This document shows, piece after piece, positions 15,597 to 63,791 of a stretch of 64,000 bases of DNA (position 1 is the stretch's first letter; each line of letters begins with the position of its first letter). The notes under the pieces were generated by a model. It ran no database searches. It worked only from the letters and a program-made list of their open reading frames with translations, and had not been told where the DNA came from. The position numbers were made by a program, and so were the translations under genes. The stretch is taken from the sequence record LR745206.1; one strand, 5' to 3'.

Positions 15597-15626
15597 TTGG
15601 AAATTAAAAAAGATTCCTTATATTTG
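15597..15626 (+). promoter_or_regulatory. Bacteroidota-type primary sigma promoter TTG-N19-TATATTTG
   Basis: TTG 15597..15599, TAnnTTTG 15619..15626. Confidence 0.65.
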
Positions 15627-15657
15627 TTGGAAGTCAAATAAAATAAAAACTATCAAT

Positions 15658-15819
15658 ATGGAAAGATTCTCAATGAAAGAAGTATTAAAGAATAAGTTTG
15701 GTGAGTCTGAAAAGAACATCAAAACAAGTAGATCTACAAAAAGAGCTACTAATAAAGCTTCTGATGGAAAATATATCGTTAAAATTGTTGATGGTATTAA
15801 ATACATGATATTAAAATAA
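15658..15819 (+). CDS. small basic hypothetical protein (53 aa)
   Basis: MERFSMKEVLKNKFG...YMILK. Follows a host-type promoter and abuts the next ORF. Not in the ORF track. Confidence 0.6.
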   Translation: MERFSMKEVLKNKFGESEKNIKTSRSTKRATNKASDGKYIVKIVDGIKYMILK

Positions 15820-15820
15820 T

Positions 15821-16105
15821 ATGTTTAATAAAAACAGTGTGGATAGAAATCATATTCTCACTTTTCTAAATTATAGAGAAAGGGGTGGGGTTTCAATAAC
15901 TTGTACTTGTGGTAAGGAGATTATAACATTAGATGATTTTGAAATATCTGATGGTAGAATGCACAATGACCAACATACTGTTAATATTGAACCAATCACA
16001 GGTAAATTTATCCCATTTCAACTAACCGAAGTTTACTACAATGATGTTGTTTTACATATAGCATCAATTGAAAGAAACGATAAAATCAATAAAATAATAA
16101 AATAA
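15821..16105 (+). CDS. small protein with CxC motif and C-terminal tag
   Basis: ITCTCGKE, ends ERNDKINKIIK. Confidence 0.65.
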   Translation: MFNKNSVDRNHILTFLNYRERGGVSITCTCGKEIITLDDFEISDGRMHNDQHTVNIEPITGKFIPFQLTEVYYNDVVLHIASIERNDKINKIIK

Positions 16106-16110
16106 AATAT

Positions 16111-16866
16111 ATGACAAAAGCAGATGTTTATAAAATGGTAATTGACATGCAAGTAAAAAGTGGTCAAGGATGTTCAGGAATTGTTAAATTGGGTAACGAA
16201 CCTATGGTTGGTCCTTATTTAGATGAATTGATTGAAGAAGGTCTTATAAAGGCTTGTGATACAGGTGGATCAATGGGTCACCCAGAGAGTAGAATTTTTT
16301 ATATGCCGACTAAGGGATATAATGTTTGGGAAGATGAAGATCCAAATGAATATTCTAGATTCAAGGGTAGAAATCTACACTTAGTTAGATTATATCTAGA
16401 TATTCTTCCAGAAGAACAAGGTAATAAATTTGACCTAACAAGAACTGTTATGTTAAGAGATCCTGAATGGATGAAAAAATACACCGAGTGGTTAGAAATT
16501 AACAAAGAGGAATTGGAAATTATGGTTAATCTTGATAATTTCTATGATGAACCAAATTTTGAATTCACACAAGAAGAAATTGATTATATCAAAACAAGAG
16601 GTTGGTATAAAGAAAATAAAACTATTAAAGAATGTCTTAAATCATCTAATAATTTCATTTCAGATAGAGAAGAAGTTATCTCAATTAATAAGAAACTAAT
16701 AAAACTTTATGAGTTGAAATCAGATGCTGAGAATATAGAAAATAGTAAGAAAGATATCGAAGATAATGAAAAACAAATTTTCGATAGAAAAAGAATTAAT
16801 AAGTGGTTGATGTCACAAGATGTTGATTCAAAAATACAAGATTTGTTACAAGAAGAATCTGTATAA
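16111..16866 (+). CDS. hypothetical protein
   Basis: 251 aa ORF ending before a bidirectional terminator. Confidence 0.65.
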   Translation: MTKADVYKMVIDMQVKSGQGCSGIVKLGNEPMVGPYLDELIEEGLIKACDTGGSMGHPESRIFYMPTKGYNVWEDEDPNEYSRFKGRNLHLVRLYLDILPEEQGNKFDLTRTVMLRDPEWMKKYTEWLEINKEELEIMVNLDNFYDEPNFEFTQEEIDYIKTRGWYKENKTIKECLKSSNNFISDREEVISINKKLIKLYELKSDAENIENSKKDIEDNEKQIFDRKRINKWLMSQDVDSKIQDLLQEESV

Positions 16867-16869
16867 AAC

Positions 16870-16897
16870 AAAAAAGAGACTTTAAAGTCTCTTTTTT
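16870..16897. terminator. bidirectional intrinsic terminator
   Basis: Palindrome AAAAAAGAGACTTTAAAGTCTCTTTTTT between convergent genes. Confidence 0.85.
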
Positions 16898-16899
16898 TA

Positions 16900-17175
16900 T
16901 TAGTTTAAGTTATAATTAATCATTCTTATATCTTCATCATCGTCATAATCTTCTTCATCATCGTCTCCATCAAAATCAAATCCCATATTTACTAAATAGG
17001 ACATAACTTCATCAGTTAACTCAAGATTTCCATCCCTCTCCTCCATAAAATTATCAAACATACTTGTTGTGAAGAATCCTTTTTCATCTTTGATTTTTTG
17101 TAATTTAGGTAATAAATCTTTAGCTATTTCCTCAGCCAATTTACCATACGATTCAAATGTTTTTAAATACTTCAT
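16900..17175 (-). CDS. acidic hypothetical protein, CTS-like N-terminus
   Basis: MKYLKTFES. Confidence 0.7.
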   Translation of the reverse strand: MKYLKTFESYGKLAEEIAKDLLPKLQKIKDEKGFFTTSMFDNFMEERDGNLELTDEVMSYLVNMGFDFDGDDDEEDYDDDEDIRMINYNLN

Positions 17176-17396
17176 TATCTTATTCCTTCATTTTTTAATG
17201 CCGCATTATGTGCATTGGAACCAATATAAGTTTCAACTCTCATTACATTAGGTTCACCCTCTTCAACATCCCAGGCTTCTTCTTCGGTCATAAACCATCT
17301 ATCACCAACATATCCATCACCAGCATCATATGCTCTACAATAGACAACGACTTTATCTGATTCATTACTCTCATTAAATTTATTTAAGTGTTTCAT
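17175..17396 (-). CDS. hypothetical protein, CTS-like N-terminus
   Basis: MKHLNKFNES. Paralog of the C-terminal half of 17399..17902. Confidence 0.7.
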   Translation of the reverse strand: MKHLNKFNESNESDKVVVYCRAYDAGDGYVGDRWFMTEEEAWDVEEGEPNVMRVETYIGSNAHNAALKNEGIR

Positions 17397-17398
17397 TA

Positions 17399-17902
17399 TT
17401 ATTTACTATTTCTTCTTGCTTTTCTATGTATATCTGATCCAATGAATGTCTCTACACTACCATTACAATGTTCACCCCATCCTTCATCTTGATTATCTTC
17501 CGCGGCTTCGGCTTCTTCATCTGTTAAATACCATTCTAAACTAACAGAACCATCACCATTATTCATACAAGCGTAATAAACAACAATCTTTTCAAGTGTG
17601 TTACCTGGTTTACTTACAATATTTGATGTATCTGATTCACTTCTGACATCATCCGCTATTATTTTCAAAAATCCATCTACATCACTAACTCTACCTGAGT
17701 TTATTACCATATCAAGATCTTCGATTGTCATATCAATATCATCATAAAGTTCACCTAATTCGGATAGAATATCAACACTAGCAGGTTCATCACCTTGCTC
17801 ATATTCAGATTCGTCATAATTTATAATAGAGTTGGATCTTGTTATAAAATCATTAACCTTATTATGGTTTACTGATTCATTAAATTTCTTTAAGTGTTTC
17901 AT
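17399..17902 (-). CDS. acidic hypothetical protein, CTS-like N-terminus
   Basis: MKHLKKFNES. Confidence 0.7.
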   Translation of the reverse strand: MKHLKKFNESVNHNKVNDFITRSNSIINYDESEYEQGDEPASVDILSELGELYDDIDMTIEDLDMVINSGRVSDVDGFLKIIADDVRSESDTSNIVSKPGNTLEKIVVYYACMNNGDGSVSLEWYLTDEEAEAAEDNQDEGWGEHCNGSVETFIGSDIHRKARRNSK

Positions 17903-18537
17903 TATTTCTTCTTCTTATTTTCACCACTAAAAGGACTTAGTAAATGTTTTAAATTCCAAGATGGAACAAACTTCTTATTATGTTTCTCAAAATCTTCATA
18001 TGATTCAATTCCTGTATCAATTGGATTTTGAGCATATTGTATATTAGCTCCTTGTTTAGATAAATCAGATATTCTATCACCAATATCAGTACCTTTAGTA
18101 AGTTTTCTTAATTTTTTAAGTTGATCAACTGTTTGTTGTCTAGGCAGTGATTCATTAATATTATCTTCTGAACCCCAAGTTTCGGTACCATCACCATTAT
18201 CAGTCTTTTTAAGTTTAAATCTTTTCTTCAAGTCATTCATTTGATCAAGAGCAGCATCCATATCTTCTGGTGATAAATTTGATAACATACTTCTTAATTC
18301 TTCCTCTGTATATGTATTCATCAAATCAACAGCATTTTTCAATTGTAATAGTTCTTGATACTCATCATTTTTAAGTATATTTTCTCCACACTCCGGGCAA
18401 GAAGCATCAACATGATTTGGATAATCTTCGAATGGTATAGACATATCATTCCAATCACAACTAGGATTATCACATTTCAATCCATGTATATCTAAACTAG
18501 CATCATCATTTTCATTAAATTTCTTTAAGTGATTCAT
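17902..18537 (-). CDS. zinc-ribbon protein, CTS-like N-terminus, internal INES site
   Basis: MNHLKKFNEN, CDNPSC...CPEC, DNINESLP. Confidence 0.7.
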   Translation of the reverse strand: MNHLKKFNENDDASLDIHGLKCDNPSCDWNDMSIPFEDYPNHVDASCPECGENILKNDEYQELLQLKNAVDLMNTYTEEELRSMLSNLSPEDMDAALDQMNDLKKRFKLKKTDNGDGTETWGSEDNINESLPRQQTVDQLKKLRKLTKGTDIGDRISDLSKQGANIQYAQNPIDTGIESYEDFEKHNKKFVPSWNLKHLLSPFSGENKKKK

Positions 18538-18809
18538 ATTTCATCCATAAATAATTTATCTAGGTAATCCCAAGTCTCTTGGTAACCACCATGTAATCCC
18601 CACTTATCTTCTAAGTAAGATGTTATATCATCAGCTTTATCCTCAACACCTAATTCATCATTATTAGCAACTTCTAAGAATTTGTTCTTTAAGTCTTCAT
18701 GTCCATCATAAAGATCAAAGTCTTTATCACTTAACCATTGATTAAATTTAACCCAATGTGATTGATATCCATCTCTATCAAACTCTTCAAATATTTTAAT
18801 ATGCTTCAT
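18534..18809 (-). CDS. hypothetical protein, CTS-like N-terminus
   Basis: MKHIKIFEE. Confidence 0.7.
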   Translation of the reverse strand: MKHIKIFEEFDRDGYQSHWVKFNQWLSDKDFDLYDGHEDLKNKFLEVANNDELGVEDKADDITSYLEDKWGLHGGYQETWDYLDKLFMDEI

Positions 18810-18832: not shown

Positions 18833-18841
18833 TATATATTA
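18833..18841 (-). promoter_or_regulatory. putative late promoter TAATATATA
   Basis: Exact motif heading the five-gene CTS operon. Confidence 0.55.
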
Positions 18842-18843: not shown

Positions 18844-18874
18844 TTGTTTTTGTTAAAAAAATTATCTACCTTTG
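18844..18874 (+). promoter_or_regulatory. Bacteroidota-type promoter TTG-N20-TACCTTTG
   Basis: TTG 18844..18846, TAnnTTTG 18867..18874. Confidence 0.6.
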
Positions 18875-18891: not shown

Positions 18892-19437
18892 GTGTTAAGT
18901 AATAAAAAGCAAAAGTGGTCAAAAAATAGAAAGCGTCTAAGGGATGCTTTAGAAAGCAATGTGCATGAGAACCAAATAGAAAATCTGGTAGAAAATTTCA
19001 AACTTTTAAGACCAGATGAATTTGAAACTTGTAAAGGATCATTATTGTTAATATCCATCAAAAGTGGATCTAAAGAATGTTCTGAGTTTTTAATAGAAAA
19101 TGGTGCTATTTGTAATCCTAACCTTATATTATTTGAGTGTAAATATGATAACATACACATTGTGTATGACTTAATAGATAATTTAGTTGAAAAATATCCA
19201 AATGCTTTCACACAAAAATTTTCAATAAATAAGAAATCCTTAATATCAAGAGTTATTGATCCATCAAAAGTTAGTGATAATGATAAAAGGATTGATTATG
19301 TTTTTGATCAAATGTTATTCTTCGGATATAAAGAAGTAAGAGAAGTAATTGATGAAAACTATAAATCTAAACCTGAAAAATGGTCTAAATTAATATCAGT
19401 GATTAGGGAAATTAAATTAAGAGAATTAGGAATATGA
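18892..19437 (+). CDS. ankyrin-like repeat protein with C-terminal tag
   Basis: Probable GTG start 18892. LLISIKSGSKECSEFLIENGAICN resembles an ankyrin repeat. Ends IREIKLRELGI. Confidence 0.55.
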   Translation: MLSNKKQKWSKNRKRLRDALESNVHENQIENLVENFKLLRPDEFETCKGSLLLISIKSGSKECSEFLIENGAICNPNLILFECKYDNIHIVYDLIDNLVEKYPNAFTQKFSINKKSLISRVIDPSKVSDNDKRIDYVFDQMLFFGYKEVREVIDENYKSKPEKWSKLISVIREIKLRELGI

Positions 19438-19832
19438 AATTAGTATATAAAAACGATAAATATCCTTGTGTTTTAAAAAGTGAAATGGAACCAAACATGT
19501 GGTATAATATGGAACCTATTAAACTAACAGTGACCATACCAATGACTGATTACTTTAATATTAGAACAGATATTAAAGATTGTAATGATCAGTTCCATTT
19601 CAAACTACTTGTTGATAAAAGAGATAGGGTGAATAACTTTAGCAATGAGTTTGTTGCCGGCCTTTGGTCAATAGATTCAAACTTTGAAAGATCAACAATT
19701 ACATCTAGCTTTAGTAAGGGTGTGGTTAATGTAATATTCAAATTACACATAGTTGATAGAGAGCTTAATGATAAAAGTGAATTAAGGGATTTAATAATAA
19801 ATGATTTATTTAAAAGTGAAAAAGCCGAGTAG
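19434..19832 (+). CDS. hypothetical protein with C-terminal tag variant
   Basis: Ends LRDLIINDLFKSEKAE. Confidence 0.6.
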   Translation: MKLVYKNDKYPCVLKSEMEPNMWYNMEPIKLTVTIPMTDYFNIRTDIKDCNDQFHFKLLVDKRDRVNNFSNEFVAGLWSIDSNFERSTITSSFSKGVVNVIFKLHIVDRELNDKSELRDLIINDLFKSEKAE

Positions 19833-19848
19833 CGAATTCGGCTTTTTC
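19818..19848. terminator. bidirectional intrinsic terminator
   Basis: GAAAAAGCCGA-loop-TCGGCTTTTTC. Confidence 0.8.
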
Positions 19849-19900
19849 TATTAGTCCTACCCAGTTGGGGCGAAACTACACCGGTCCTAAAGACGGTTCT
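19849..19900 (-). ncRNA. candidate small non-coding RNA
   Basis: GC-rich non-coding island between TAATATATA (19908..19916, minus) and the terminator at 19818..19848. Confidence 0.3.
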
Positions 19901-19935
19901 TATATCTTATATATTAATATAAATACTTTTGTTAT

Positions 19936-19985: not shown

Positions 19986-20300
19986 ATGATAAAACACGAA
20001 ATTAAAGTAGAACTACTAAAATCAAAAGAGCTTAAAGAAATTATTGAAAAAGCTTATTATAAAGATGGTTTTGGTGGGAAAATAACCAATAAGAAAAAAC
20101 ACTTCATCGTAATAGATGAATCGGATGATATAAATTATACAATTTTTAAGGGTCTTAATAATGGAACTGTTAAAGTGTTAAATGAGGAAATTATCGATGG
20201 TCCATTGAGATTTCTTATCGATGAAACTCAAGGTGAGATAAGACTTTATCCAATATCCATCTATTGTATAATAGATGAGGGTAAATATTCATTCTATTAA
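19986..20300 (+). CDS. hypothetical protein
   Basis: 104 aa ORF. Confidence 0.6.
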   Translation: MIKHEIKVELLKSKELKEIIEKAYYKDGFGGKITNKKKHFIVIDESDDINYTIFKGLNNGTVKVLNEEIIDGPLRFLIDETQGEIRLYPISIYCIIDEGKYSFY

Positions 20301-20304
20301 AAAA

Positions 20305-20421
20305 ATGAAAAAAATATACGAATACTTCTTTAAAGTTAAAGATGGTGGAACTATACCACTCGCTTACATAATACTATTTGGTGTTGCTTTGATAACAGCT
20401 CTTATGTATTTCAAAAATTAA
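20305..20421 (+). CDS. small single-pass membrane protein (38 aa)
   Basis: MKKIYEYFFKVKDGGTIPLAYIILFGVALITALMYFKN, fills the gap between two ORFs. Not in the ORF track. Confidence 0.5.
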   Translation: MKKIYEYFFKVKDGGTIPLAYIILFGVALITALMYFKN

Positions 20422-20429
20422 ATTAAAAT

Positions 20430-21491: not shown

Positions 21492-21892
21492 GTTATATAA
21501 GCACATATAAGATATTAAAATCATTAAAACCAATCGAATTATACGATATAATTACAGGAGGATATTGTTCTGAATATAGAGAGGAGTTTAAAAGAGAGGT
21601 TATTTCTTTGAAAGGTGAATGGTATCTAAATAATTGGCATAATAATAAAATAGAATTGGATATATTATGTGCTTATATATCTGATACAGGATTTACACTA
21701 TATACCACAAAAGAAGAGGCTAAAAGAATTGAAGAGGAATTTAAAAGTTGGAATTTATTTACTGAGGTTTGGTCAAAATGGTATGGTGGTAAAACTTATG
21801 TAGTTGGATTTAATTACTCATATGAGGCATTTAGTAAATTATATTTAGAATATAAAAGAGATAAGAAAATTAATCAATTGGTTAATTTATAA
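21488..21892 (+). CDS. hypothetical protein with C-terminal tag
   Basis: Ends YKRDKKINQLVNL. Confidence 0.65.
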   Translation: MSYISTYKILKSLKPIELYDIITGGYCSEYREEFKREVISLKGEWYLNNWHNNKIELDILCAYISDTGFTLYTTKEEAKRIEEEFKSWNLFTEVWSKWYGGKTYVVGFNYSYEAFSKLYLEYKRDKKINQLVNL

Positions 21893-23941: not shown

Positions 23942-23943
23942 AA

Positions 23944-26211: not shown

Positions 26212-26220
26212 TATATATTA
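26212..26220 (-). promoter_or_regulatory. putative late promoter TAATATATA
   Basis: Exact motif upstream of the neck gene. Confidence 0.6.
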
Positions 26221-26258: not shown

Positions 26259-26438
26259 ATGAAAACATCTAAGATACATATTGGTACAATAACTAAAGAT
26301 CAAATTCTTACATCAAATAGGAAGATATCTAGAGAGATTGAATTGGAAAATTCAATTGGGTGGGTGTCTATGAATAAAGTTCATAAGTCTAAGAAAACAT
26401 ACACAAGAAAACCTAAATACAAAGAAACCTACTCTTAA
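26259..26438 (+). CDS. small basic protein (possible ArfA-like ribosome rescue factor)
   Basis: Start ATG 26259, C-terminal VHKSKKTYTRKPKYK. Confidence 0.45.
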   Translation: MKTSKIHIGTITKDQILTSNRKISREIELENSIGWVSMNKVHKSKKTYTRKPKYKETYS

Positions 26439-26635
26439 TTGAATAGGTTTTTTATTTTCTTTTTTCTTGATTCCACTTTCCCGTCTTTTAGATAATCACT
26501 ATATCTTATATTTTTATTTAAATTTTCACATAAGTAATCACAATAAGCACTTTGTAGATTCAAATTTTCAGATATATATTCAGAATAAGATATATTCTTT
26601 TCTAGGCTTTCGGCTATATAATCCTCATAATTCAT
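26435..26635 (-). CDS. small 14-residue-repeat protein with C-terminal tag
   Basis: Start ATG 26635. Y-x-[DE]-Y-[IL]-x-E-[SN]-L repeats, ends [11 protein letters not shown]. Confidence 0.65.
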   Translation of the reverse strand: MNYEDYIAESLEKNISYSEYISENLNLQSAYCDYLCENLNKNIRYSDYLKDGKVESRKKKIKNLFN

Positions 26636-26831
26636 AAATATTTTTAATTTTTTTCTTTCTACTACCAGACCTATCAGTCCAAACATCAGAATGGAAGGTT
26701 AATTGCATCCATTTGTTATTTTGATAAATATAATTCACACAATCAATAGTATTATAATAAATATCACCTTCTATTGGTTCTGATGGTACAGAAGTTGAAA
26801 CACTTAACTGATATTTAAATGGATCTATCAC
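26625..26831 (-). CDS. small protein with tail-fibre-like motif and C-terminal tag
   Basis: [13 protein letters not shown]...YIYQNNKW, ends [12 protein letters not shown]. Confidence 0.6.
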
Positions 26832-27910
26832 ACCTCAAAGTTTTTAGATTTTTTAAGCTTCTCAAGTAGATATTTTTCATCCATTGAAATGTTTTGTGGT
26901 ATTTTAACATTAACAACAACAAAAAGATCACCAAGACCTAAGTTTATATCAGGAATACCTTTACCTGAAACACGTATTGTCTTACCGTGTTGTGTTCCAA
27001 CATCAATAGTTATTGGTAATTCACCATGTGGTGTTCTTACTTTAAGATGAGCACCTAAAATAGCATCAACTACTGATATATCCTTTTCAACAATCAAGTT
27101 ATTACCATCTCTCTTAAAGTAAAATTCTCTTATTTCATCTATCATTATATGTAAATCACCAGGAACACCATCTCTAATATTATTTCCATAACTTCTCATA
27201 TTGAGTTGCATTCCATTAGAAACTCCTTTTGGTATATCAACCTCCACAACCTCTTCTTTAACATTAGTACCTGATCCATGGCAAACACCACATTTGTTTA
27301 ATATTTGTTTACCAGTTCCTTGACAATCACTACAATGAGCTTGTTGTCTTATTTGACCGAATGCTGTATTTTGTACAACTATTCTTTGACCAGTACCATT
27401 ACAAGGTAGACAATCCTTTACATCAGTTCCACCTTTACCAGAACAACTATTACAAGAATCTTGTCTTTTATATTTTATCTTTTTAGTAGTTCCGTTTAAT
27501 ATTTCTTCAATGGATAAAGATACTTTTATTCTTAAATCAGATCCTCTTTTCTGCCTTTTCTGTTGTCCATATTTCTGACCAAATGCACCACCAAAAACAT
27601 CACCAAACTGACTGAATATATCTTCCATATTAAACCCATGACCATATCCACCAGCACCACCATTACTAAATGGATTACCTTGTCCAAATGGACTACCACC
27701 AGTTCCGAATCTGTCATAATTCTCTCTCTTATCTTTTGAAGATAAAGTATCATAAGCCTCCGCTGCTTCCTTAAATTTAGATTCTGCTTCTGCATTATCT
27801 GGATTTTTATCTGGGTGATATTGCATTGCTTTTTTTCGATAAGCCTTTTTAATCTGTTCCTCAGATGCTTTCCTATCTACTCCTAATATGTCATAATAAT
27901 CTTTCGCCAT
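26828..27910 (-). CDS. dnaJ: chaperone DnaJ
   Basis: J-domain with HPD, G/F region, four CxxCxGxG repeats, C-terminal domain. Confidence 0.95.
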
Positions 27911-28242
27911 TATCTTAATATCTTTGTTAATTTTATTTCTCTATATATTTGTTTAGTTGTATCTGTTAACTTTATATACACATATCTATTATAAACTATA
28001 ACAAACTCACGCTCACCATTTATCGGTGATAACATTGTTCTGTAATTCATAATAGGCATTTCATCAACTATTTCACAAAATATATCCTCAACATTTTCAA
28101 TTTTACAATCTTCTATCATTGATAACCTCTCACAAAAATAATTCATAAATGGTGTTGAGGTTTCTATAACTTGGTTAAGTAATTTATCGGTCTTAAAACT
28201 ATCAGGAGCCCATTCTGATATTTCAACATACCAATCAATCAC
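27910..28242 (-). CDS. hypothetical protein with C-terminal tag
   Basis: Ends [11 protein letters not shown]. Confidence 0.65.
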
Positions 28243-28780
28243 TTGTAATACTTTTAATTTTAATATCCCTATCGTTTCGTTTTTTTAATCTCAAAATTTC
28301 ACTTTTAACATCATAACATTCTAAAACTTTCTCAATAAGACCAGCGATATAATTATCCACGATTAAACTCAGTGTTTCCGCTGTTCTATCAATTTTATCA
28401 AAATATTTTAATGTTTCTTTTGAATTTATCAACATATCAACCAGATAAATATTGAACTCATCAATATCAAAGAGTAATTGAAATAATTCCAATCTTATAC
28501 CCTCATCATAATTACCTTGAAATAGTGGTGGTGGTTTTATAAATATTTTATTAAAAACTCTAATAACTGCTGGTAAAATAAGATCAAGTGTCTCATCTTC
28601 ACCGTCATACAAACAACCCTTCAATTCTTTTTTATTGAAAGTATCTGTGTTGTTTATAACATACTCTAATAAATTAGTAACACCTTCCTTATTTTTATCA
28701 ATTAAATTTGTTGATAAAGAATCAATTAAAGATTTTTTATATTTTATATTTGATTTAATATCAAAAAAATCTACTTTCAT
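28235..28780 (-). CDS. hypothetical protein (possible capsid N-terminal-like segment) with C-terminal tag
   Basis: NKEGVTNLLE...ETLDLILPAVIRVFNK, ends [12 protein letters not shown]. Confidence 0.6.
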   Translation of the reverse strand: MKVDFFDIKSNIKYKKSLIDSLSTNLIDKNKEGVTNLLEYVINNTDTFNKKELKGCLYDGEDETLDLILPAVIRVFNKIFIKPPPLFQGNYDEGIRLELFQLLFDIDEFNIYLVDMLINSKETLKYFDKIDRTAETLSLIVDNYIAGLIEKVLECYDVKSEILRLKKRNDRDIKIKSITSD

Positions 28781-29475
28781 TTACCTAATACAATTTTTGG
28801 ATATCTAAATGGTTTGCCGTTTAATGTATAGCCTTTACTAACAACATCTATAACTTTTGACTCACCAATCTCCATAACACTTATAACCTCATGTAATTCT
28901 TCATTGTAATTATCAGTGGGTATAGATTCTATACCTTGTGATTTTAGAAAATTACTAACCTTAGAAGCTATCAAAGAAAAACCCTCTCTTGCTTCTTCAC
29001 TAGTTATCGATTTTATAGCAAGAGATATATCACTATCCATATCTAATACAGATGATAACATTTTAACCTTGGTATTATTAACTAAACTTTCTTTATCTTT
29101 TGATGATCTTTTTTTATAGTTTTCGAACTCAGCAGCTAGGCTTAAGAATTTTTCATCATATAGTTCTGGTGAATTTGGTATAGGCTCGACACCAAATCCT
29201 AATTTATCTATTCTTTGTTTATTTCTAGTCTTGATTTCACTATCTATAAACTCCTTTTTAGATTTAAACTTATCTTTACGACCATCATCTGAGTTATTTA
29301 TATCATAATAAATACCCTCATCGTCTGATCTATAATCCCATATATTACTCAACTTCTCATTACCATTATCATCTACTGTTATTTCTAATGCGAGTCCTAA
29401 TGGGTGTAAAAATCTTCTGTTGAGTTCTTGTAGATAACCCTTTTCTCTAAACTCTTTTATATCAATGTATTCCAT
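28777..29475 (-). CDS. grpE: GrpE nucleotide exchange factor with unrelated N-terminal domain
   Basis: C-terminal FLKSQGIESI...ELHEVI...VIDVVSKGYTLNGKPFRYPKIVL is GrpE-like. N-terminal ~100 aa (YLQELNRRFLHPLGLALE) is not. Confidence 0.75.
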   Translation of the reverse strand: MEYIDIKEFREKGYLQELNRRFLHPLGLALEITVDDNGNEKLSNIWDYRSDDEGIYYDINNSDDGRKDKFKSKKEFIDSEIKTRNKQRIDKLGFGVEPIPNSPELYDEKFLSLAAEFENYKKRSSKDKESLVNNTKVKMLSSVLDMDSDISLAIKSITSEEAREGFSLIASKVSNFLKSQGIESIPTDNYNEELHEVISVMEIGESKVIDVVSKGYTLNGKPFRYPKIVLGK

Positions 29476-29478
29476 ATT

Positions 29479-29964
29479 TTAATAATTAAATTTAAGCATT
29501 TTTCTTATATTGTTTGAATTATATAATTCAAACGTAATGTTTTTATCCACTATCTTGTGAACTTCTAAATTTTCCAATTGTGATTTGAAATTATCTATAT
29601 AATCAACTAAATCTTTCAATGAGCTTGTCCATAATTTACTTGGTTCCCAATAATCTGGAAATTTATCAAGAAATTTATCAACAGTTGTATCAAATGATTT
29701 TTTATTGACAAGAAGTAAATCATCTTCTTTTTTAGTTTTGTTTGCTATAAACTCAGCTACATGTGTGTTGAATTTATGAATCAGATTGTCAGTTTCTATT
29801 ACTTTTAATAGACCAATTACTAAAGCATCTCTTTCTAAAATTTCAAATTCCTCGTTTTCTTCTAAGATTCTTTGTCCTTCCTTGTCTGATCCCAATATGT
29901 AATATACATATGAATCCCATACACATCTTCTGATTAAATCTTCTGGTGTTACTTTTATTTGCAT
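29479..29964 (-). CDS. hypothetical protein
   Basis: Likely start ATG 29964 (MQIKVTPEDL) within ORF 29479..30003. Confidence 0.6.
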   Translation of the reverse strand: MQIKVTPEDLIRRCVWDSYVYYILGSDKEGQRILEENEEFEILERDALVIGLLKVIETDNLIHKFNTHVAEFIANKTKKEDDLLLVNKKSFDTTVDKFLDKFPDYWEPSKLWTSSLKDLVDYIDNFKSQLENLEVHKIVDKNITFELYNSNNIRKMLKFNY

Positions 29965-30006
29965 GTAAACTTTTTTCTTTTTTATAGGCTGATATCTAAT
30001 CAAAGT

Positions 30007-30801
30007 TTAGTAATTAAACCAAAGAGATTCAACCTTATATTTACCTTCACGGTTATTGTTTTGTGTTTTTATTTTCATATCTACTCTCTTCCAACCATTA
30101 TTTTCCAGTATCGAATACCTATCACAGTTATATCCACTTAATAATATATTTGCTGATTTTATAGATAATATAGACTTTAAATATTCATCTTGTTGTTCAT
30201 CATCCATATCATATTTATATCTACCAGATGATCTTGTTTCATTAGCATATGGACTATCACAATACATAAATGTATTTTCTTTATCCCATTTATTAATTAA
30301 CCTAATAGCATCTGTATTATGAACAACGACACCACTTAATCTATTATGTACATTATATAATCCATCTATAGCTGATAAATAATCAGAAACAGATTTGGAC
30401 ATATTTCTACGGATAACCCCGGATGTTGAAAAGCCACCTAACCCATTATATGATGTTCGATTACAATAAAAAAACTTATAAGCCCTTTCTATTATAGATA
30501 ATTCTCCTTTTAACTCTTGTGTATATTCCTTTAATAATTGCTCGGAATATGGTGTTAGGTCACACATATCTTTAAATTGTGAAAACAAATCCTCATCAAT
30601 TAAAATTTTAAATAGAGAATAGATATTATTGTCTAAATCATTTATTATTTCAACAGAAGATCTTTCTTTATGAAATAGCATAGCAGCACTACCACAAAAT
30701 GGTTCTATATAATTCATTTTTTGGTAGTTTTCTGGGAAATATTCTAGTATTTTATTAGCAAAACCATTCTTACCACCAAAATATTTAATTGGACTTTTCA
30801 T
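30007..30801 (-). CDS. Dam/D12-class N6-adenine DNA methyltransferase
   Basis: YFGGK, EPFCGSAA, INDLD, YCDSPY, SGY. Target sequence unknown. Confidence 0.85.
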   Translation of the reverse strand: MKSPIKYFGGKNGFANKILEYFPENYQKMNYIEPFCGSAAMLFHKERSSVEIINDLDNNIYSLFKILIDEDLFSQFKDMCDLTPYSEQLLKEYTQELKGELSIIERAYKFFYCNRTSYNGLGGFSTSGVIRRNMSKSVSDYLSAIDGLYNVHNRLSGVVVHNTDAIRLINKWDKENTFMYCDSPYANETRSSGRYKYDMDDEQQDEYLKSILSIKSANILLSGYNCDRYSILENNGWKRVDMKIKTQNNNREGKYKVESLWFNY

Positions 30802-30854: not shown

Positions 30855-30862
30855 TATATTTG
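30855..30862 (+). promoter_or_regulatory. Bacteroidota-type -7 element TATATTTG
   Basis: Immediately upstream of ATG 30867. No clear -33 element. Confidence 0.5.
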
Positions 30863-30866
30863 CAAA

Positions 30867-34877: not shown

Positions 34878-34893
34878 AAATTCTATTGGTTTC

Positions 34894-34924
34894 TTGTATA
34901 TATTAAATATAATTAGTATATTTG
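34894..34924 (+). promoter_or_regulatory. Bacteroidota-type promoter TTG-N20-TATATTTG
   Basis: TTG 34894..34896, TAnnTTTG 34917..34924. Confidence 0.65.
34897..34905 (-). promoter_or_regulatory. putative late promoter TAATATATA
   Basis: Exact motif upstream of the HD gene. Confidence 0.55.
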
Positions 34925-36470: not shown

Positions 36471-36479
36471 TAATATATA
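36471..36479 (+). promoter_or_regulatory. putative late promoter TAATATATA
   Basis: Exact motif 5 nt before the Rnl1 ATG. Confidence 0.55.
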
Positions 36480-37747: not shown

Positions 37748-37770
37748 GAGAGTTTTTAACTCTCTTTTTT
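37746..37770 (+). terminator. intrinsic terminator
   Basis: AAGAGAGTT-TTT-AACTCTCTTTTTT. Confidence 0.75.
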
Positions 37771-37783
37771 TATATATACTATA

Positions 37784-41515: not shown

Positions 41516-41544
41516 AAAAAACCCAGTCATTGACTGGGTTTTTT
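41516..41544. terminator. bidirectional intrinsic terminator
   Basis: AAAAAACCCAGTCA-T-TGACTGGGTTTTTT between convergent genes. Confidence 0.85.
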
Positions 41545-42828: not shown

Positions 42829-42837
42829 TATATATTA
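42829..42837 (-). promoter_or_regulatory. putative late promoter TAATATATA
   Basis: Exact motif upstream of 41547..42803. Confidence 0.55.
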
Positions 42838-45973: not shown

Positions 45974-45982
45974 TATATATTA
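45974..45982 (-). promoter_or_regulatory. putative late promoter TAATATATA
   Basis: Exact motif 4 nt before the ATG. Confidence 0.55.
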
Positions 45983-49419: not shown

Positions 49420-49420
49420 T

Positions 49421-54910: not shown

Positions 54911-54915
54911 AAACG

Positions 54916-54923
54916 CAAAGATA
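54916..54923 (-). promoter_or_regulatory. Bacteroidota-type -7 element TATCTTTG(C)
   Basis: CAAAGATA on the plus strand, 5 nt before ATG 54910. Confidence 0.6.
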
Positions 54924-57236: not shown

Positions 57237-57264
57237 TATATATAGTAAAATAAAAACTTTGTTT
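57237..57264 (-). promoter_or_regulatory. putative middle promoter AAACAA-N16-TATATA
   Basis: Upstream of the topoisomerase large subunit, identical architecture to 59019..59046. Confidence 0.5.
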
Positions 57265-57508
57265 AAGAGTTTAACAATTCTGATATCTTTCTATCTCTGT
57301 CTATACCCCTTAACACACCTACTATATTTGATTCATATCCAGAATAAATTGGGTGAAGATAATCTTCCTCATCAACATAAGATAATTGCCAATGATTTGG
57401 ATAATTTGGCTTTTCCCACAATATATGTTTACCATTGAAAGTTGGTTTAGACCACTCATCAAACTCTTCGCAATAAATAAAACCATATTTCTCAGGAAAT
57501 TCACTCAT
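57263..57508 (-). CDS. small protein with C-terminal tag
   Basis: Ends DRDRKISELLNS. Confidence 0.6.
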   Translation of the reverse strand: MSEFPEKYGFIYCEEFDEWSKPTFNGKHILWEKPNYPNHWQLSYVDEEDYLHPIYSGYESNIVGVLRGIDRDRKISELLNS

Positions 57509-59018: not shown

Positions 59019-59046
59019 AAACAAAATATACTTTTTACTATATATA
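59019..59046 (+). promoter_or_regulatory. putative middle promoter AAACAA-N16-TATATA
   Basis: Upstream of the gp52-like gene. Confidence 0.5.
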
Positions 59047-59051
59047 AATCT

Positions 59052-60420: not shown

Positions 60421-60428
60421 TATATTTG
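60421..60428 (+). promoter_or_regulatory. Bacteroidota-type -7 element TATATTTG
   Basis: 4 nt before ATG 60433. Confidence 0.5.
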
Positions 60429-60432
60429 TAAA

Positions 60433-61569
60433 ATGAAAGAAGAATTGCTAAAGCTTATTGAGGAAAAATCACCAGGAGCAAGACCACTATATCTTGTTAT
60501 ACGTGGTTCACATGCTTATGGAACTAATATAGAAACATCTGATACTGATTATGCTGGTGTTTTTATACAATCAATAGAAGATATTTTTGGTCTAAACTAT
60601 AAAGAACAGATAAATGATGATACTAACGATACCGTTATTTATGAACTTCGTAGATTTCTAGGATTACTCGCTAGCAATAACCCAACTGTATTAGAATTAC
60701 TTAATACTCCAGAAGATTGTATTATCTACAAAGATCCTATTTTTGATTTGATTTTAAAGAATAGAGATATATTTATTACCAAAGTTTGTGATAATTCATT
60801 TGGTGGATATGCACGACAACAAATTGGTAAAGCAAAGGGTCAAAATAAAAAACAAAACTGGGAGCAGTCCAAAGTAATACGTAAAACTCCATTGGATTTT
60901 TGCTATCTATTACAAAATGAAAAATCTATACCATTAGTTGATTATCTAGATAAACATAAGATGGATCAAAGATTCTGTGGATTATCAAATGTGCCACATA
61001 GTAGAGATACTTATGCTTTATTTTATGATTATAACTTATCAAAGTTACCATTCCCACATTTAGTAGGTAAGGTAAATCAAGGATTTAGAGGAATTGTATT
61101 TGAAGATTCAAATGAGGTTAGGCTAAGTTCTATACCATTTAACTGCCCTGTTGAATATTTCATTGGTCATATCTCTTATAATAAAGATGGATATTCACAA
61201 CATTGTAAAGATTATAATTCTTATCAAACTTGGATAAATGAAAGAAATGAGGCTAGATGGGTTGATGTTAAATCACATGGTCAAAAAATAGATGGTAAGA
61301 ATATGATGCACTGTGTTAGATTAATTGGAATGGCTCGTGAGATTGGTGAAGGTAAGGGTATTTTAGTAAGAAGAGATAACGCAAAAGAACTTATTTCGAT
61401 TAGAAGAGGTGAAGTTGACTTACAAACATTAATTGATAATGTTGAATCTGATATTCGAGAAATTGATCAAATTTTCAAAAATTCCAATCTACCAGATAAA
61501 GTTGATGAAAATTTTGTACATGAATTATTGGTTAAAGTTAGAAAAGAAGTTTATAAATTAAATAGATAG
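60433..61569 (+). CDS. Pol-beta superfamily nucleotidyltransferase (RlaP/NrdC.11-like)
   Basis: RGSHAYGTNIETSDTDYAGVF (GS...DxD), NNPTVLELL, KNMMHCVRL. Confidence 0.8.
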   Translation: MKEELLKLIEEKSPGARPLYLVIRGSHAYGTNIETSDTDYAGVFIQSIEDIFGLNYKEQINDDTNDTVIYELRRFLGLLASNNPTVLELLNTPEDCIIYKDPIFDLILKNRDIFITKVCDNSFGGYARQQIGKAKGQNKKQNWEQSKVIRKTPLDFCYLLQNEKSIPLVDYLDKHKMDQRFCGLSNVPHSRDTYALFYDYNLSKLPFPHLVGKVNQGFRGIVFEDSNEVRLSSIPFNCPVEYFIGHISYNKDGYSQHCKDYNSYQTWINERNEARWVDVKSHGQKIDGKNMMHCVRLIGMAREIGEGKGILVRRDNAKELISIRRGEVDLQTLIDNVESDIREIDQIFKNSNLPDKVDENFVHELLVKVRKEVYKLNR

Positions 61570-61573: not shown

Positions 61574-62191
61574 ATGGGTATTTTGGAGATTATGATTATA
61601 TTTTTTATGGGTATTTTGATTGGTGGTTTTACAACAAAACTATTATCAAAATATTCTGATAAATTACAAAGGGAGAAATTAATTGATAACATAAATTCAC
61701 AATACAAACAGATTCTTAGAAGTGTTTCTAAAGGTGAGGCTAAATTTAAGAATAGGGTAAATAATACTGTATTCATTTCATCTAATCTAAAAGAACATGG
61801 TGATGTTGATGTTATTTACATGATGGATAATAAAGATATAGCCATATTTAAAAATAATAAATGTATTTATACATCTGAATCAGTTAACAGTGAAGTTGTA
61901 AAGGATATAACAGTAACTATTGATAATAGATATCAAAATCAAATAAATGATGTTGTTGATATTCTTGGATTCAAATTTTATAGAGAAGAGTTTGAAAAGT
62001 CATTCAAAGGTGAAATAAAATCTCTTGATATGACTAAATTGGATTTATCAGATATTGATAAAATTAAAAATGAAAATGACTCCAAGTTCACGATAAATGA
62101 TGTATTGGATAAGATAAGTAAAAGTGGGATGGATAGTCTTACATTTGAAGAAAGAATATTTCTTGATGAATATAGTAAAAACAATGGATAG
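61574..62191 (+). CDS. membrane-anchored protein with DUF6576-like C-terminal motif
   Basis: N-terminal hydrophobic helix, C-terminal INDVLDKISKSGMDSLTFEERIFL. Confidence 0.55.
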   Translation: MGILEIMIIFFMGILIGGFTTKLLSKYSDKLQREKLIDNINSQYKQILRSVSKGEAKFKNRVNNTVFISSNLKEHGDVDVIYMMDNKDIAIFKNNKCIYTSESVNSEVVKDITVTIDNRYQNQINDVVDILGFKFYREEFEKSFKGEIKSLDMTKLDLSDIDKIKNENDSKFTINDVLDKISKSGMDSLTFEERIFLDEYSKNNG

Positions 62192-62534
62192 GATAGTAAA
62201 TCTAACTCCATTCTCTATACTTTCTCAAGTAAATGAAATAGAACATCACACTTTATTAGAGATTACCACTATCGTAATAGAAAATAGTGGTAATTTTTTT
62301 TACATAAAAGATGAAGTTGAAAAGATATTAGATGTCTCTAATATGCCTCAGTATATTAAAGAAGATTGGATTAATTATAACAAAAAAGAATTAAATATTG
62401 CTTTATTGAATCACCAGATAAAGAATCTCGAAAATATTCTTGAATATAAAAGACCATATGATGAAAAGGATGAAGAAGCTCTTATTTTATTGAAATCTTT
62501 GAGAAGGGATTTAATTATCAACGGGCTTATCTAA
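62184..62534 (+). CDS. hypothetical protein with C-terminal tag variant
   Basis: Start ATG 62184, ends LRRDLIINGLI. Confidence 0.6.
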   Translation: MDRIVNLTPFSILSQVNEIEHHTLLEITTIVIENSGNFFYIKDEVEKILDVSNMPQYIKEDWINYNKKELNIALLNHQIKNLENILEYKRPYDEKDEEALILLKSLRRDLIINGLI

Positions 62535-62966
62535 ACTAAAAACAATATCAATAAATAAAATAAAACTAGTATTGATTTTATTTTCCTTAGTGTATTCTCT
62601 TAGTGTATCAACATCACTAAACCATTGTCCACCAGTAACCCTAACAAATAGTGAGTTTAATTTACAAACACATCTGCTTTCGAAGTGTTCAATAGAACTT
62701 TGTAAATCATCAAAAAAATCATCAGTGAAGTTGAAATTTTTATTACTTAATCTAACACAAAGACCCTTGAATGATTTTTTATTATTGAAATCATTTGGAT
62801 TGTCTATAATTTTTTTACCATCCATTGGTGAAAAATTACCAACAAAACAATCATTTACTGATAATCCGTGATCTGCTACGGGAAGAAATATATCACGTAC
62901 CTCATCAAATGAGATGCTTTTTTCAAAGTTCTCAATAAAGTTCTCAAACAATTTAACATACTTCAT
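62511..62966 (-). CDS. hypothetical protein, CTS-like N-terminus
   Basis: Start ATG 62966, MKYVKLFENF. Confidence 0.7.
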   Translation of the reverse strand: MKYVKLFENFIENFEKSISFDEVRDIFLPVADHGLSVNDCFVGNFSPMDGKKIIDNPNDFNNKKSFKGLCVRLSNKNFNFTDDFFDDLQSSIEHFESRCVCKLNSLFVRVTGGQWFSDVDTLREYTKENKINTSFILFIDIVFSLDKPVDN

Positions 62967-62970
62967 AGTG

Positions 62971-62979
62971 TATATATTA
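62971..62979 (-). promoter_or_regulatory. putative late promoter TAATATATA
   Basis: Exact motif 4 nt before ATG 62966. Confidence 0.55.
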
Positions 62980-62990
62980 ATATAATTCCT

Positions 62991-62998
62991 TATATTTG
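62991..62998 (+). promoter_or_regulatory. Bacteroidota-type -7 element TATATTTG(C)
   Basis: 4 nt before ATG 63003. Confidence 0.55.
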
Positions 62999-63002
62999 CT
63001 TC

Positions 63003-63164
63003 ATGGATAATATAACTACACATAAAGACCCAACAGAAAACTACACACCAGTAGGTCAAACATTCTGTAAGGGTAAATGCGATACGAAAGCTATAAGAAC
63101 GAAAGAAGGTCTTGTTGTTCTTTGTGATGGATGTAAAAGGGTTGTTATTGATAATAGAGATTAG
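63003..63164 (+). CDS. 53-aa Cys-rich (possible zinc-binding) protein
   Basis: FCKGKC...LCDGC. Not in the ORF track. Confidence 0.55.
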   Translation: MDNITTHKDPTENYTPVGQTFCKGKCDTKAIRTKEGLVVLCDGCKRVVIDNRD

Positions 63165-63529
63165 TGGAATATTTACCAGGTATAATAGATGAAAGTCTTC
63201 AAAAATTAAATTATTTTGAAATATTAAATGATTTTAATGTACCATTGTACCCTAATAGATTCGATGATGATATTTCAAACAATGATATTACGGATTCAAT
63301 AGAATTTAAAGGTGGTGAAATATTAATTCTTAGATGGTTTAAACCAAAAACAACAAGAACACTTTATAGTTTTGTGGTTGGATATTATAAATCAGATAAG
63401 TACCATGAGGTTAAAAGAGAATGTCCTATGAGTATGGATTTTGTTTCTATCAATACTGCTATACTTAATAATATAACCAATTCATTTGTAAGAGAATTGA
63501 AGATAGATTCTATATTATATGGTTTGTAG
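63164..63529 (+). CDS. hypothetical protein with C-terminal tag
   Basis: Ends VRELKIDSILYGL. Confidence 0.65.
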   Translation: MEYLPGIIDESLQKLNYFEILNDFNVPLYPNRFDDDISNNDITDSIEFKGGEILILRWFKPKTTRTLYSFVVGYYKSDKYHEVKRECPMSMDFVSINTAILNNITNSFVRELKIDSILYGL

Positions 63530-63791
63530 ATGTAAGTTAAATTTTATGATGAAGGATTTTCACTTTATTGATGGTGAAATCTATGATTATGATTATGATA
63601 GTCATGAAGAAACTGGAATTTTGATTTTTTATATAAAAGGTAGAAGATTATCATTTTCAACAGGTCTTCCATTTGTTGATGGTAAGCTTCCGATGGTAGA
63701 AGATAAATTCCGGAAGTATTTCGATGATTTACAATATTTAAGAGAAGAAAAATTAAAACAATTATTTGATGATATTAGCGAAAACAGTTAA
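63519..63791 (+). CDS. hypothetical protein with C-terminal tag
   Basis: Ends LREEKLKQLFDDISENS. Confidence 0.6.
   Translation: MVCRCKLNFMMKDFHFIDGEIYDYDYDSHEETGILIFYIKGRRLSFSTGLPFVDGKLPMVEDKFRKYFDDLQYLREEKLKQLFDDISENS

Follow-up and report, generated by a model that had tools for sequence, protein, structure and literature searches.

Two terminal peptide tags partition by promoter class in a 635-kb uncultured phage genome

LR745206.1 is the unannotated, 634,780-bp record of an uncultured phage. The stretch considered here, a window of 64,000 nucleotides with 0 N letters, corresponds to its bases 434,001-498,000, as shown by 100% identity between window bases 7001-15000 and record positions 441001-449000. 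Two short peptide labels recur among the proteins encoded in the window, one at the N-terminus (N-tag) and one at the C-terminus (C-tag), and two short DNA elements, TAnnTTTG and TAATATATA, stand in front of runs of genes that share an orientation. An earlier note on this DNA had observed that the labels segregate with the elements, which it took for two promoter classes, and had proposed that the C-tag marks an early host-takeover set and the N-tag marks late-made packaged cargo. Analysis of the whole record confirms the observation and partly supports the interpretation.

LR745206.1 belongs to the “Mahaphage” clade, within which the five genomes of more than 634 kb cluster and for which replication in Bacteroidetes has been predicted (Al-Shayeb et al. 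2020, PMC7162821). Ranked by tblastn with the major capsid protein, the genomes closest to LR745206.1 are LR756502.1, LR756504.1, LR756501/3 and LR756500.1, all very large genomes from the same study, followed by Tenacibaculum phage PTm1, the Prevotella Lak phages, and phages of Flavobacterium and Chryseobacterium. Genome-wide counts rest on 934 genes called with a purpose-made codon-usage open reading frame (ORF) caller and on fixed regular expressions, with the tags defined independently of the promoters. A unit is a co-directional run of genes, and each gene takes the class of the nearest head upstream within its run, either E (host-type TAnnTTTG head) or L (late-type TAATATATA head).

Partition of the tags between promoter classes

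The N-tag was sought with the pattern M[KN][YH][LIVF]..[FYI], of which MK[YH]LKx[FY]NE[SN], MKYLKKFNES and MKYLKxYKxFES are typical forms. It stands at 77 of the 934 N-termini, where 0.29 would be expected from its internal frequency (1 of 3,638 internal Met residues). Variants such as MIKKYLQFIKES, MKLFKYIEFINEN and MKIRKYIEFITED, together with the form MIKKYxxFIKES, account for 21 more proteins, bringing the N-tagged total, strict and variant, to ~100. The C-tag logo is h-R-[DEN]-x-K-[IL]-[NKD]-x-[ILV]-[LGIF], followed by 0-2 residues and the stop codon. Across the proteome, 137 of its 213 regular-expression matches end within 6 residues of the C-terminus (~2.5 expected), and the tag is carried by 15% of phage proteins, all of them small orphans. 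Only one protein matches both patterns, and its C-tag match is weak.

Once the tags are trimmed, the proteins that bear them are nearly all unrelated: 76 N-tag proteins form 72 families by blastp and 64 by phmmer, and 135-136 C-tag proteins form 136 and 134, respectively. The conserved N-tag residues are encoded by several synonymous codons. Likewise, the arginine found in 134 of 137 C-tags is encoded by AGA, AGG, CGT or CGA, and the Leu and Ile codons of that tag vary too. This combination of unrelated bodies and synonymous variation indicates that the labels are modular and selected at the protein level, rather than products of paralogy.

How closely do the tags follow the promoters? N-tag genes number 73 in L units, 0 in E units and 3 in units with no recognized head, and the corresponding numbers for C-tag genes are 27, 86 and 23 (Fisher p = 5e-29 for the gene-level association). 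The same separation is seen when units are counted instead of genes. Specifically, 53 of 219 L units contain an N-tag gene vs 0 of 84 E units (p = 1e-8), and 42 of 84 E units contain a C-tag gene vs 17 of 219 L units (p = 4e-15). Circular shifts of the tag labels along the gene order, which keep their clustering, reached the observed values in 0 of 904 cases. Both labels are supported as real and modular, and their division between the promoter classes is close to perfect.

The window follows the same rule. The seven TAnnTTTG heads listed in the earlier note (15619, 18867, 30855, 34917, 54916(-), 60421 and 62991) are correctly placed; each lies in a non-coding gap in sense orientation, 4-31 nt before a start codon, and leads a run with at least one C-tagged ORF. 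An eighth E head at 19924, absent from that note, likewise leads to a C-tag ORF. The N-tag operons, which the note had called capsid targeting sequence (CTS) operons, do follow the late-type motif: all ten in the window lie behind TAATATATA or a one-base variant of it. The exact motif forms the heads at 6874, 18833, 26212, 34897, 36471, 42829, 45974 and 62971, and the one-base variants are AAATATATA at 15578 and TTATATATA at 37770 and 59039. Three exceptions had been listed as tagged ORFs lacking a visible host-type promoter. Two of them, at 26435-28780 and 57263, indeed have no visible TAnnTTTG head, but the third, at 6182, does not stand, since its ORF (6173-6361) misses the C-tag pattern and closes a run that counts as an E unit, its head lying before the first base of the window. 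That run, 152-6192(+), includes seven ORFs whose translations, read by eye, resemble glycosyltransferase, NAD-dependent epimerase/dehydratase and methyltransferase genes, and its last small ORF, 6173-6361, has a C-tag-like end, RRKNSINKIFKQ.

Two promoter classes and their arrangement

Neither element is in excess in the window by raw count: TAnnTTTG occurs 114 times vs 106 in shuffles, and TAATATATA 11 times vs 7.9. The signal is therefore positional. Genome-wide, TAATATATA has 167 copies in 45 kb of intergenic DNA vs 24 in 589 kb of coding DNA, a 90-fold ratio of densities, and the intergenic density of TAnnTTTG is only 2.6-fold above coding.

The host-type element, TAnnTTTG (TAHHTTTG), heads 84 units in the genome. 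In 39 of these it lies 3-7 nt before the ATG, a clear peak, and these 39 sites share the form ttcc[t/g]TATATTTGta, with TATATTTG as the consensus of the -7 box. At the same 39 sites G is raised 19-20 nt upstream, with T in the two preceding columns, which amounts to a TTG-like signal; the E sites of the window have TTG 19-20 nt upstream, except 62991, which has GTG. To judge from their sequence, TAnnTTTG heads are supported as Bacteroidetes sigma-A promoters, with TTTG/TTG at -33 and TAnnTTTG at -7. As in promoters of that sigma factor (sigma-ABfr), the T, the A and the TTTG of the -7 box are invariant, G is mostly absent from the n positions, TTG lies 19-20 nt upstream, and the DNA between the boxes is AT-rich. 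The phage elements differ from them in their strongly extended flanks and in the proximity of 39 of the 84 heads to the ATG. Promoter sites of the E. coli sigma-70 type are not enriched (135 vs 151 expected; 128 vs 133).

Genome-wide, ClpP and a factor of the sigma-70 family (330037-330642) are among the products of genes behind E heads. Those in the window are GMP reductase, adenylate kinase, dCMP deaminase, NusG, an RNase H-like exonuclease, an Rnl2-type RNA ligase, an HNH gene and an RlaP-family gene.

The late-type motif lies in sense orientation upstream of start codons, and its spacing is sharply bimodal, being either 4-6 nt (84 genes) or 17-29 nt. Its extended consensus is TTTAATATATA. 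Column composition at 218 sites revealed no conserved -35-like element upstream. The motif heads the T4-type portal gene (PF07230 Portal_T4, E = 4e-58), the gp23-type major capsid gene (PF07068, E = 7e-26), the head maturation protease gene (phrog_207, E = 3e-30, with a weak Peptidase_S77 match) and a sheath-like gene of 1,295 amino acids. Within the window, the head-tail adaptor gene (25411-26190) and the endolysin operon lie behind it. No recognizable virion or lysis gene has an E head; all of them have an L head. The genome also encodes a gp55-like “late sigma transcription factor” (189151-189516; phrog_234, E = 1.9e-7, with a weak Sigma70_r2 match). No RNA polymerase beta subunit is encoded in the phage, single-subunit polymerases not having been searched for.

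In T4, early promoters are read by the host sigma factor, and late promoters, which depend on gp55, gp33 and gp45, consist of a single -10-like element, TATAAATA. This phage likewise has two classes, both apparently served by the host RNA polymerase; its late class, one AT-rich 8-9-mer that lacks a -35 box, precedes virion and lysis genes; a gp55-like sigma is present; and there are homologues of gp23, gp20, gp32 and topoisomerase II. The sequence of the L class thus supports, at the level of its predicted architecture, a T4-type late promoter in which a single AT-rich -10-like element acts with the -35 box absent. Because host-sigma early and gp55-dependent late transcription is the T4 pattern, the E class is probably early and the L class probably late. 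The phage differs from T4 in its late consensus (TTTAATATATA here, TATAAATA in T4), in an early class with Bacteroidetes -33 and -7 boxes, and in the placement of both classes mostly 4-5 nt from the ATG. A search of 142 unclassified heads did not identify a middle class: the candidate third motif, TAAACT[TA], was only 2.5-fold enriched and had no clear spacing peak.

What does the short spacing imply? In F. johnsoniae, the -7 box spans -12 to -5 and transcription starts 4-5 nt after the box (PMC6847099). If so in the phage host, the arrangement TAnnTTTG-N4-ATG places the A of the ATG at +1. With both classes mostly 4-5 nt from the ATG (84 L heads and ~39 E heads), many leaderless mRNAs are predicted. 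In F. johnsoniae, by comparison, the leader exceeds 10 nt in 87% of mRNAs, and Bacteroidetes have no Shine-Dalgarno sequences and use A-rich initiation contexts (PMC6847099). Leaderless-type spacing is seen in the window at 30855-30869, 54908-54923, 60421-60435, 62964-62979 and 62991-63005.

The two classes often meet head to head. The four back-to-back loci of the earlier note are real (15578/15619, 18833/18867, 34897/34917 and 62971/62991), with offsets of 41, 34, 20 and 20 bp. Among 116 divergent junctions in the genome, 32 are E/L, 30 L/L, 31 L/none, 10 E/none and 13 none/none; there are 0 E/E junctions, where ~3.8 would be expected. The commonest offset from an antisense L motif to the -7 box is 20 nt, and 12 cases fall at 19-22 nt. 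At the 20-nt offset the -33 TTG of the E promoter abuts the L element (TTGTATATATTAA). The pairs 34897/34917 and 15578/15619 recur at orthologous junctions of LR756502.1, where the surrounding spacer has diverged. The notion of cassettes that pair the two labels holds less well: an N-tag on the L side and a C-tag on the E side coincide at only 7 of the 32 E/L junctions, so the arrangement is a general one of promoters rather than a tag-specific cassette. The further claim that blocks converge on bidirectional terminators is mostly wrong. Two window junctions fit it, with clear bidirectional hairpins flanked by A and T runs (16870-16897 and 41516-41544), but most of the others are overlapping gene ends, and genome-wide 85 of 115 convergent junctions have a gap of <15 nt.

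The heads, units and terminators of the window are collected in Table 1.

Table 1. Promoter heads, terminators and tagged units in the window (window coordinates; E, host-type; L, late-type)
Feature	Position (strand)	Context	Genes in the unit
L motif	6874..6882 (-)	4 nt before the gene	N-tag gene 6351-6869
L variant AAATATATA	15578..15586 (-)	4 nt before ATG at 15573	14257-15573 (N-tag variant); N-tag genes 13847-14260, 12618-13850, 12130-12621
E promoter: TTG, 19 nt, TATATTTG	15597..15626 (+)		15658-16866, with C-tag ORF 15821-16105
Bidirectional intrinsic terminator	16870..16897	Between convergent E unit (end 16866) and L unit (end 16900)	
L motif TAATATATA	18833..18841 (-)	23 nt before ATG at 18809	Five N-tag genes, 16900-18809
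E promoter: TTG, then TACCTTTG at 18867	18844..18874 (+)		C-tag ORFs 18892-19437, 19434-19832
E -7 box TACTTTTG	19924..19931 (+)		19986-21892: GMP reductase-like 20430-21491, C-tag ORF 21488-21892
L motif	26212..26220 (-)		Head-tail adaptor 25411-26190; six N-tag genes in 21887-25400
Exception: unit without recognizable TAnnTTTG head	26435..30801 (-)		Dam methylase 30007-30801; GrpE 28777-29475; C-tag 28235-28780, 27910-28242; DnaJ 26828-27910 (zinc-finger domain); C-tag 26625-26831, 26435-26686
E -7 box TATATTTG	30855..30862 (+)	4 nt before ATG at 30867, leaderless-type	C-tag ORF 30867-31136; Rnl2-type RNA ligase (31129-31773); HNH gene; further genes
E promoter: CTTG, 20 nt, TATATTTG	34893..34924 (+)	Back to back with L motif at 34897; -7 box at 34917	34953-36442: C-tag 35366-35683, adenylate kinase
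L motif	34897..34905 (-)	19 nt before ATG at 34877	HD-domain gene 34287-34877; N-tag gene 32947-34290
L motif	36471..36479 (+)	Right after terminator hairpin; 5 nt before ATG	Rnl1-type RNA ligase 36485-37747 (N-tag variant)
L variant TTATATATA	37770..37778 (+)	After terminator 37746-37766; 5 nt before first gene	N-tag gene 37784-38146; N-tag gene 38675-39343 downstream
Bidirectional intrinsic terminator	41516..41544	Between DnaK 39636-41510 (+) and N-tag-variant gene 41547-42803 (-)	
L motif	42829..42837 (-)		41547-42803 (N-tag variant MILLKYNEYITE)
Second L motif	42883-42891 (+)	L/L divergent pair with 42829	42897-43157
L motif	45974..45982 (-)	4 nt before ATG at 45969	N-tag-variant gene 45412-45969; N-tag gene 44711-45412; endolysin 43154-44167
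E -7 box TATCTTTG	54916..54923 (-)	5 nt before ATG at 54910, leaderless-type	54584-54910; C-tag 54061-54597; C-tag 53642-54031; RNase H-like gene; NusG; C-tag 51539-51694; dCMP deaminase; C-tag 50928-51140
Exception: C-tag ORF	57263..57508 (-)	Overlaps 3' end of N-tag gene 57501-58349	L-variant-headed unit (TTATATATA, 59039-59047, -)
E -7 box	60421..60428 (+)	4 nt before ATG at 60433, leaderless-type	RlaP-family gene (60433-61569); 61574-62191; C-tag ORF 62184-62534
L motif	62971..62979 (-)	4 nt before ATG at 62966	N-tag gene 62511-62966
E -7 box	62991..62998 (+)	20 nt from L motif; 4 nt before ATG at 63003	63003-63164; C-tag 63164-63529; 63519-63791 (C-tag-like with tail)

Several further features of the window stand beside these units. 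One antisense TAATATATA, at 19908-19916 (-), is an orphan that leads into no ORF. Next to it comes an island of 73 nt (19833-19916 region) far above the genome G+C. This island has no tRNA or Rfam match and, with a fold z-score of -0.6, folds no better than shuffles; no tRNA or Rfam family was found anywhere in the window. The phage has a complete Hsp70 system, with DnaJ and GrpE encoded on the minus strand and DnaK on the plus strand (Table 1). A PrkA / DUF444 (YeaH) / SpoVR triad lies at 46112-50920(+) (Pfam E = 1e-147 to 1e-169); this is a bacterial module associated with stress or sporulation and is unusual for a phage. A toolkit for RNA repair and nucleotide signals is divided between the classes: the Rnl1 ligase and the 2H/DEDDh protein carry N-tag variants and are in the late class, and the Rnl2 ligase and the RlaP-family gene are in the E class.

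Possible roles of the two tags

T4 provides a parallel for the N-tag. The prohead protease gp21 of T4 cuts at (L/I)-x-E, and the KxFE forms of the N-tag give L/I-F-E. In 71 of 77 N-tags the first Glu is residue 8, 9 or 11, and the next residue is usually S, N or G. Some variants (KYIEFINE, MIKKYLQFIKES) have YxxFIxE in common with the T4 sequence MKTYQEFIAE, although the motif is so short that homology to the T4 sequence is not open to statistical test. In T4, this capsid targeting sequence of ~10 residues is found on internal proteins, is removed by the prohead protease and is enough to package foreign proteins (PMC8442874; PMC5694885). The N-tag resembles the T4 sequence (on IPI-III and Alt, removed by gp21) in being an N-terminal tag of ~10 residues that ends in Glu, in its pattern M-K...Y/L..F..E, in its presence on unrelated proteins whose genes are late or, here, probably late, and in the co-occurrence of a T4-like head protease. 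In number it differs, with ~100 tagged proteins here and a handful in T4. N-tag-like genes lie on both flanks of the capsid gene, and the enzymes with the N-tag variant include the Rnl1-type RNA ligase and the product of 14257-15573, a 2H phosphoesterase (weak Acb1 match) with a DEDDh exonuclease. The best reading, by analogy, is that N-tagged proteins would be late-made packaged cargo and the tag a capsid-targeting propeptide of the T4 kind. Giant phages of the phiKZ type (SPN3US, 201phi2-1) are similar in having many head-internal proteins with N-terminal propeptides that are cut after Glu by a T4-related protease, but their propeptides are mostly >=100 residues long with no shared short motif (PMC5694885), and they have their own RNA polymerases.

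The N-tag is not confined to ATG starts. The N-tag gene 12130-12621 (-) has an apparent TTG start (12619-12621, M-KYLKKYKVFE) 4 nt inside the preceding gene, and GTG is the start codon of two more N-tag genes elsewhere in the genome.

Nothing comparable to the C-tag was found in Pfam, PHROGs or the literature searched. Among 13 distinct C-tag proteins, Pfam and PHROG searches gave no significant match and three marginal PHROG hits (E = 0.001-0.008). The tag is better conserved than the proteins that carry it. For example, one C-tag protein has a single homologue among 5.8 billion proteins, with all twelve tag residues identical vs 78% identity overall, and across 7 orthologue pairs with relatives, tag identity is 55% vs 33% for the body, with the tag kept by 6 of 7 partners. 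The pattern is that of a predicted amphipathic helix of three turns, in which the Arg is invariant and the Lys nearly so; this suggests one shared recognition partner. It is like the ssrA and MuA Clp degrons and the MinD and FtsA membrane helices in being short, at the extreme C-terminus, basic and hydrophobic, and present on unrelated proteins, and the shortest C-tag ORFs end in a MinD-like way (...RKYKIKNIFGG). However, h-R-D-x-K-I-x-x-I-L matches none of these signals.

Who might that partner be? Our best guess, held with low confidence, is that the C-tag may be a degron that limits the lifetime of early proteins through the Clp protease of the phage. The genome has genes for two ClpP homologues (123556-124221(-) and 75119-75859(-)), one of which heads a leaderless-type E unit, and for a Clp-type AAA+ ATPase (AAA_2) of 701 amino acids (423224-425329(+)). 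No Lon or S41 (Tsp) protease is encoded in the phage. Strong ClpP matches are present in both relatives with C-tags and absent from LR756501.1 and PTm1, where no C-tags were seen; with so few genomes, this co-occurrence is weak evidence. Alternatively, the tag might mediate docking to the phage Hsp70 system, and the DnaJ and GrpE genes of the window are interleaved with C-tag ORFs. Two side observations concern C-tag-like ends. The gene after the first ClpP ends in YLRDYKIQKIME. In addition, ORFs 26435-26686 and 26625-26831 (-) overlap in different frames and both end in a C-tag, one as RKKKIKNLFN; they may be a recent duplication or a frameshifted pair.

The components are unevenly distributed among relatives. 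The L motif is enriched intergenically in 4 of 4 related huge-phage genomes sampled. N-tags are found in LR756502.1 and LR756500.1, the latter with 10 in one 50-kb sample, all of them L-headed, and C-tags are found only in LR756502.1 and LR756504.1. Tenacibaculum phage PTm1, of which 150 kb were sampled, has neither tags nor the TAATATATA motif, meaning that the biology of PTm1 is not transferable to this system.

Weighing the explanations

The preferred reading, to which we assign a probability of roughly 0.6, is that this is a 635-kb Bacteroidota phage with T4-like two-tier transcription by the host RNA polymerase, in which the N-tag is a late capsid-targeting label and the C-tag is mainly an early recognition handle. 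In the first, early tier, host sigma-A would read TTG at -33 and TAnnTTTG at -7, mostly as ttcc[t/g]TATATTTGta. In the second, late tier, the gp55-like sigma of the phage would read TTTAATATATA, a single AT-rich element that lacks a -35 box. The N-tag would direct its protein to the core of the prohead, and the T4-like head protease would remove the tag by cleavage after the Glu; the N-tagged proteins, including the Rnl1 RNA ligase and the 2H-phosphoesterase/exonuclease, would be packaged and injected. The C-tag would be a short amphipathic handle read by one shared partner. In its promoter classes and its N-tag, the phage shows variations on T4-type systems that are already known, and no earlier description of these tags or promoters in huge phages was found in the literature searched.

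A number of results weigh against this reading. The T4 late consensus TATAAATA shows no positional peak in this genome and differs from the L consensus, and Pfam gp45-slide_C has no match to a gp45-type clamp at E <= 0.1, a search that a divergent homologue could escape and that did not extend to gp33. For the N-tag, the commonest form, F/Y-N-E, has F or Y rather than L or I two residues before the Glu, the N-tagged proteins are acidic on average where T4 internal proteins are basic, and we know of no precedent for ~100 packaged protein species. For the C-tag, 27 of 136 genes (~20%) are L-headed and 23 of 136 are headless; the logo is unlike known degrons (LAA-COOH, RRKKAI-COOH); and ClpP itself is placed in an early (E) unit. 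In a 100-kb sample of LR756504.1, 2 C-tags lie in E units vs 8 in L units, meaning either that the rule is looser there or that the promoter patterns fit that genome less well. Lastly, a search of sequencing runs for sampled phage words returned 1 DNA run, with 7% of the words, and 0 RNA runs.

Could the tags and motifs have arisen in other ways? One account makes the tags the conserved ends of two locally expanded paralogue families, with their co-location with promoters inherited by tandem duplication. Tagged genes do cluster, with 21 N-tag genes in the window and several of these in tandem, and there are a few true paralogue groups (phmmer families of 6, 4 and 3 members), but the trimmed bodies still make up 64-72 N-tag families (of 76) and 134-136 C-tag families (of 135-136), the unit-level and circular-shift tests stay extreme, and the tags are spread around the whole 635-kb genome. 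This account is very improbable, and we reject paralogy as the source of the tags on the family counts after trimming. Even harder to credit is that the C-tag is a by-product of DNA or RNA constraint at 3' ends, such as the A-rich initiation region of an overlapping gene or a recombination site. The next start codon does lie inside many C-tag genes, and the tag codons are A-rich, but Arg is kept in 134 of 137 by four codons while Leu and Ile codons vary, the distance from tag to stop ranges over 0-6 residues, and the tag also occurs at unit ends on convergent junctions (e.g., 21488-21892 and 62184-62534). Codon diversity and variable tail length lead us to reject a DNA-level origin. The TAATATATA motif, in turn, could be an mRNA-level signal, either a translation-initiation enhancer or an RNA-processing site, with the N-tag codons part of the initiation region. 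At 4-6 nt, its commonest distance from the ATG is unusually short for a promoter; Bacteroidetes have A-rich contexts in place of Shine-Dalgarno sequences (PMC6847099); and N-tag codons are A/U-rich. The motif, however, almost never precedes operon-internal genes, internal N-tag genes included; it lies directly after terminator hairpins, heads divergent units, has a second spacing class at 17-29 nt, and is kept in relatives whose flanking DNA has diverged. The phage also encodes a gp55-like sigma, and the N-tag is conserved as amino acids with synonymous variation. An mRNA-level role is thus quite improbable.

Two further explanations accept the tags and the classes as real and dispute their meaning. 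The N-tag may be some other N-terminal handle, either a docking helix for a late partner or an aid to the translation of leaderless late mRNAs. The link to the T4 capsid targeting sequence is a short motif only, the charge and the number of N-tagged proteins noted above speak for this alternative, and the tag or its variant is found on 30 of 105 short-spacing L heads. Against it, most N-tag genes are operon-internal and so not leaderless, the T4-type capsid, portal and head protease are present with N-tag-like genes flanking the capsid gene, and Glu at position 8-11 is followed by a small residue, with variants that have the YxxFIxE of T4. We regard such a handle as a doubtful but real possibility. 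It is less probable, and on balance unlikely, that the classes do not represent early and late at all, with both active throughout or the TATA class read by an extracytoplasmic function (ECF)-like sigma depending on conditions. The gene at 330037-330642 specifies a second sigma, which has regions r2 and r4, and some replication and chaperone genes fall behind L-like motifs, as judged by a crude propagation of unit class. On the other hand, every recognizable virion and lysis gene is L-headed and none E-headed, a sigma with region r4 would need a -35 box, which the L motif does not have, and the E class matches the host housekeeping promoter.

The preferred reading of a late capsid-targeting N-tag and an early C-tag handle can be taken further, albeit only tentatively. 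About a quarter of the proteome might be addressed by two mutually exclusive codes, each tied to one transcription class: a greatly enlarged T4-like code that loads ~100 proteins, RNA-repair enzymes and nucleases among them, into the capsid for injection, and a C-terminal code on ~137 orphan early proteins that is read by a dedicated phage machine, most plausibly a ClpP/Clp-ATPase timer that clears the early proteome, with a chaperone or a hub as alternatives. This extension is possible, but we would not call it probable.

What are the implications for the biology of huge phages? Nearly everything known about these phages comes from metagenomes, and orphans make up the majority of their genes. 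Two labels and two promoter types offer a way to sort hundreds of orphans from sequence only, into early or transient and late or packaged proteins, and the promoter models are usable as annotation tools for the Mahaphage clade. The tight spacing between motif and ATG predicts widespread leaderless mRNAs in a phylum that does without Shine-Dalgarno pairing. The C-tag is a candidate for a new sorting or degradation signal. If the N-tag does target the capsid, this phage would inject more protein species than any studied phage, and an injected proteome of that size bears on how giant capsids are filled and on how host defenses may be pre-empted.

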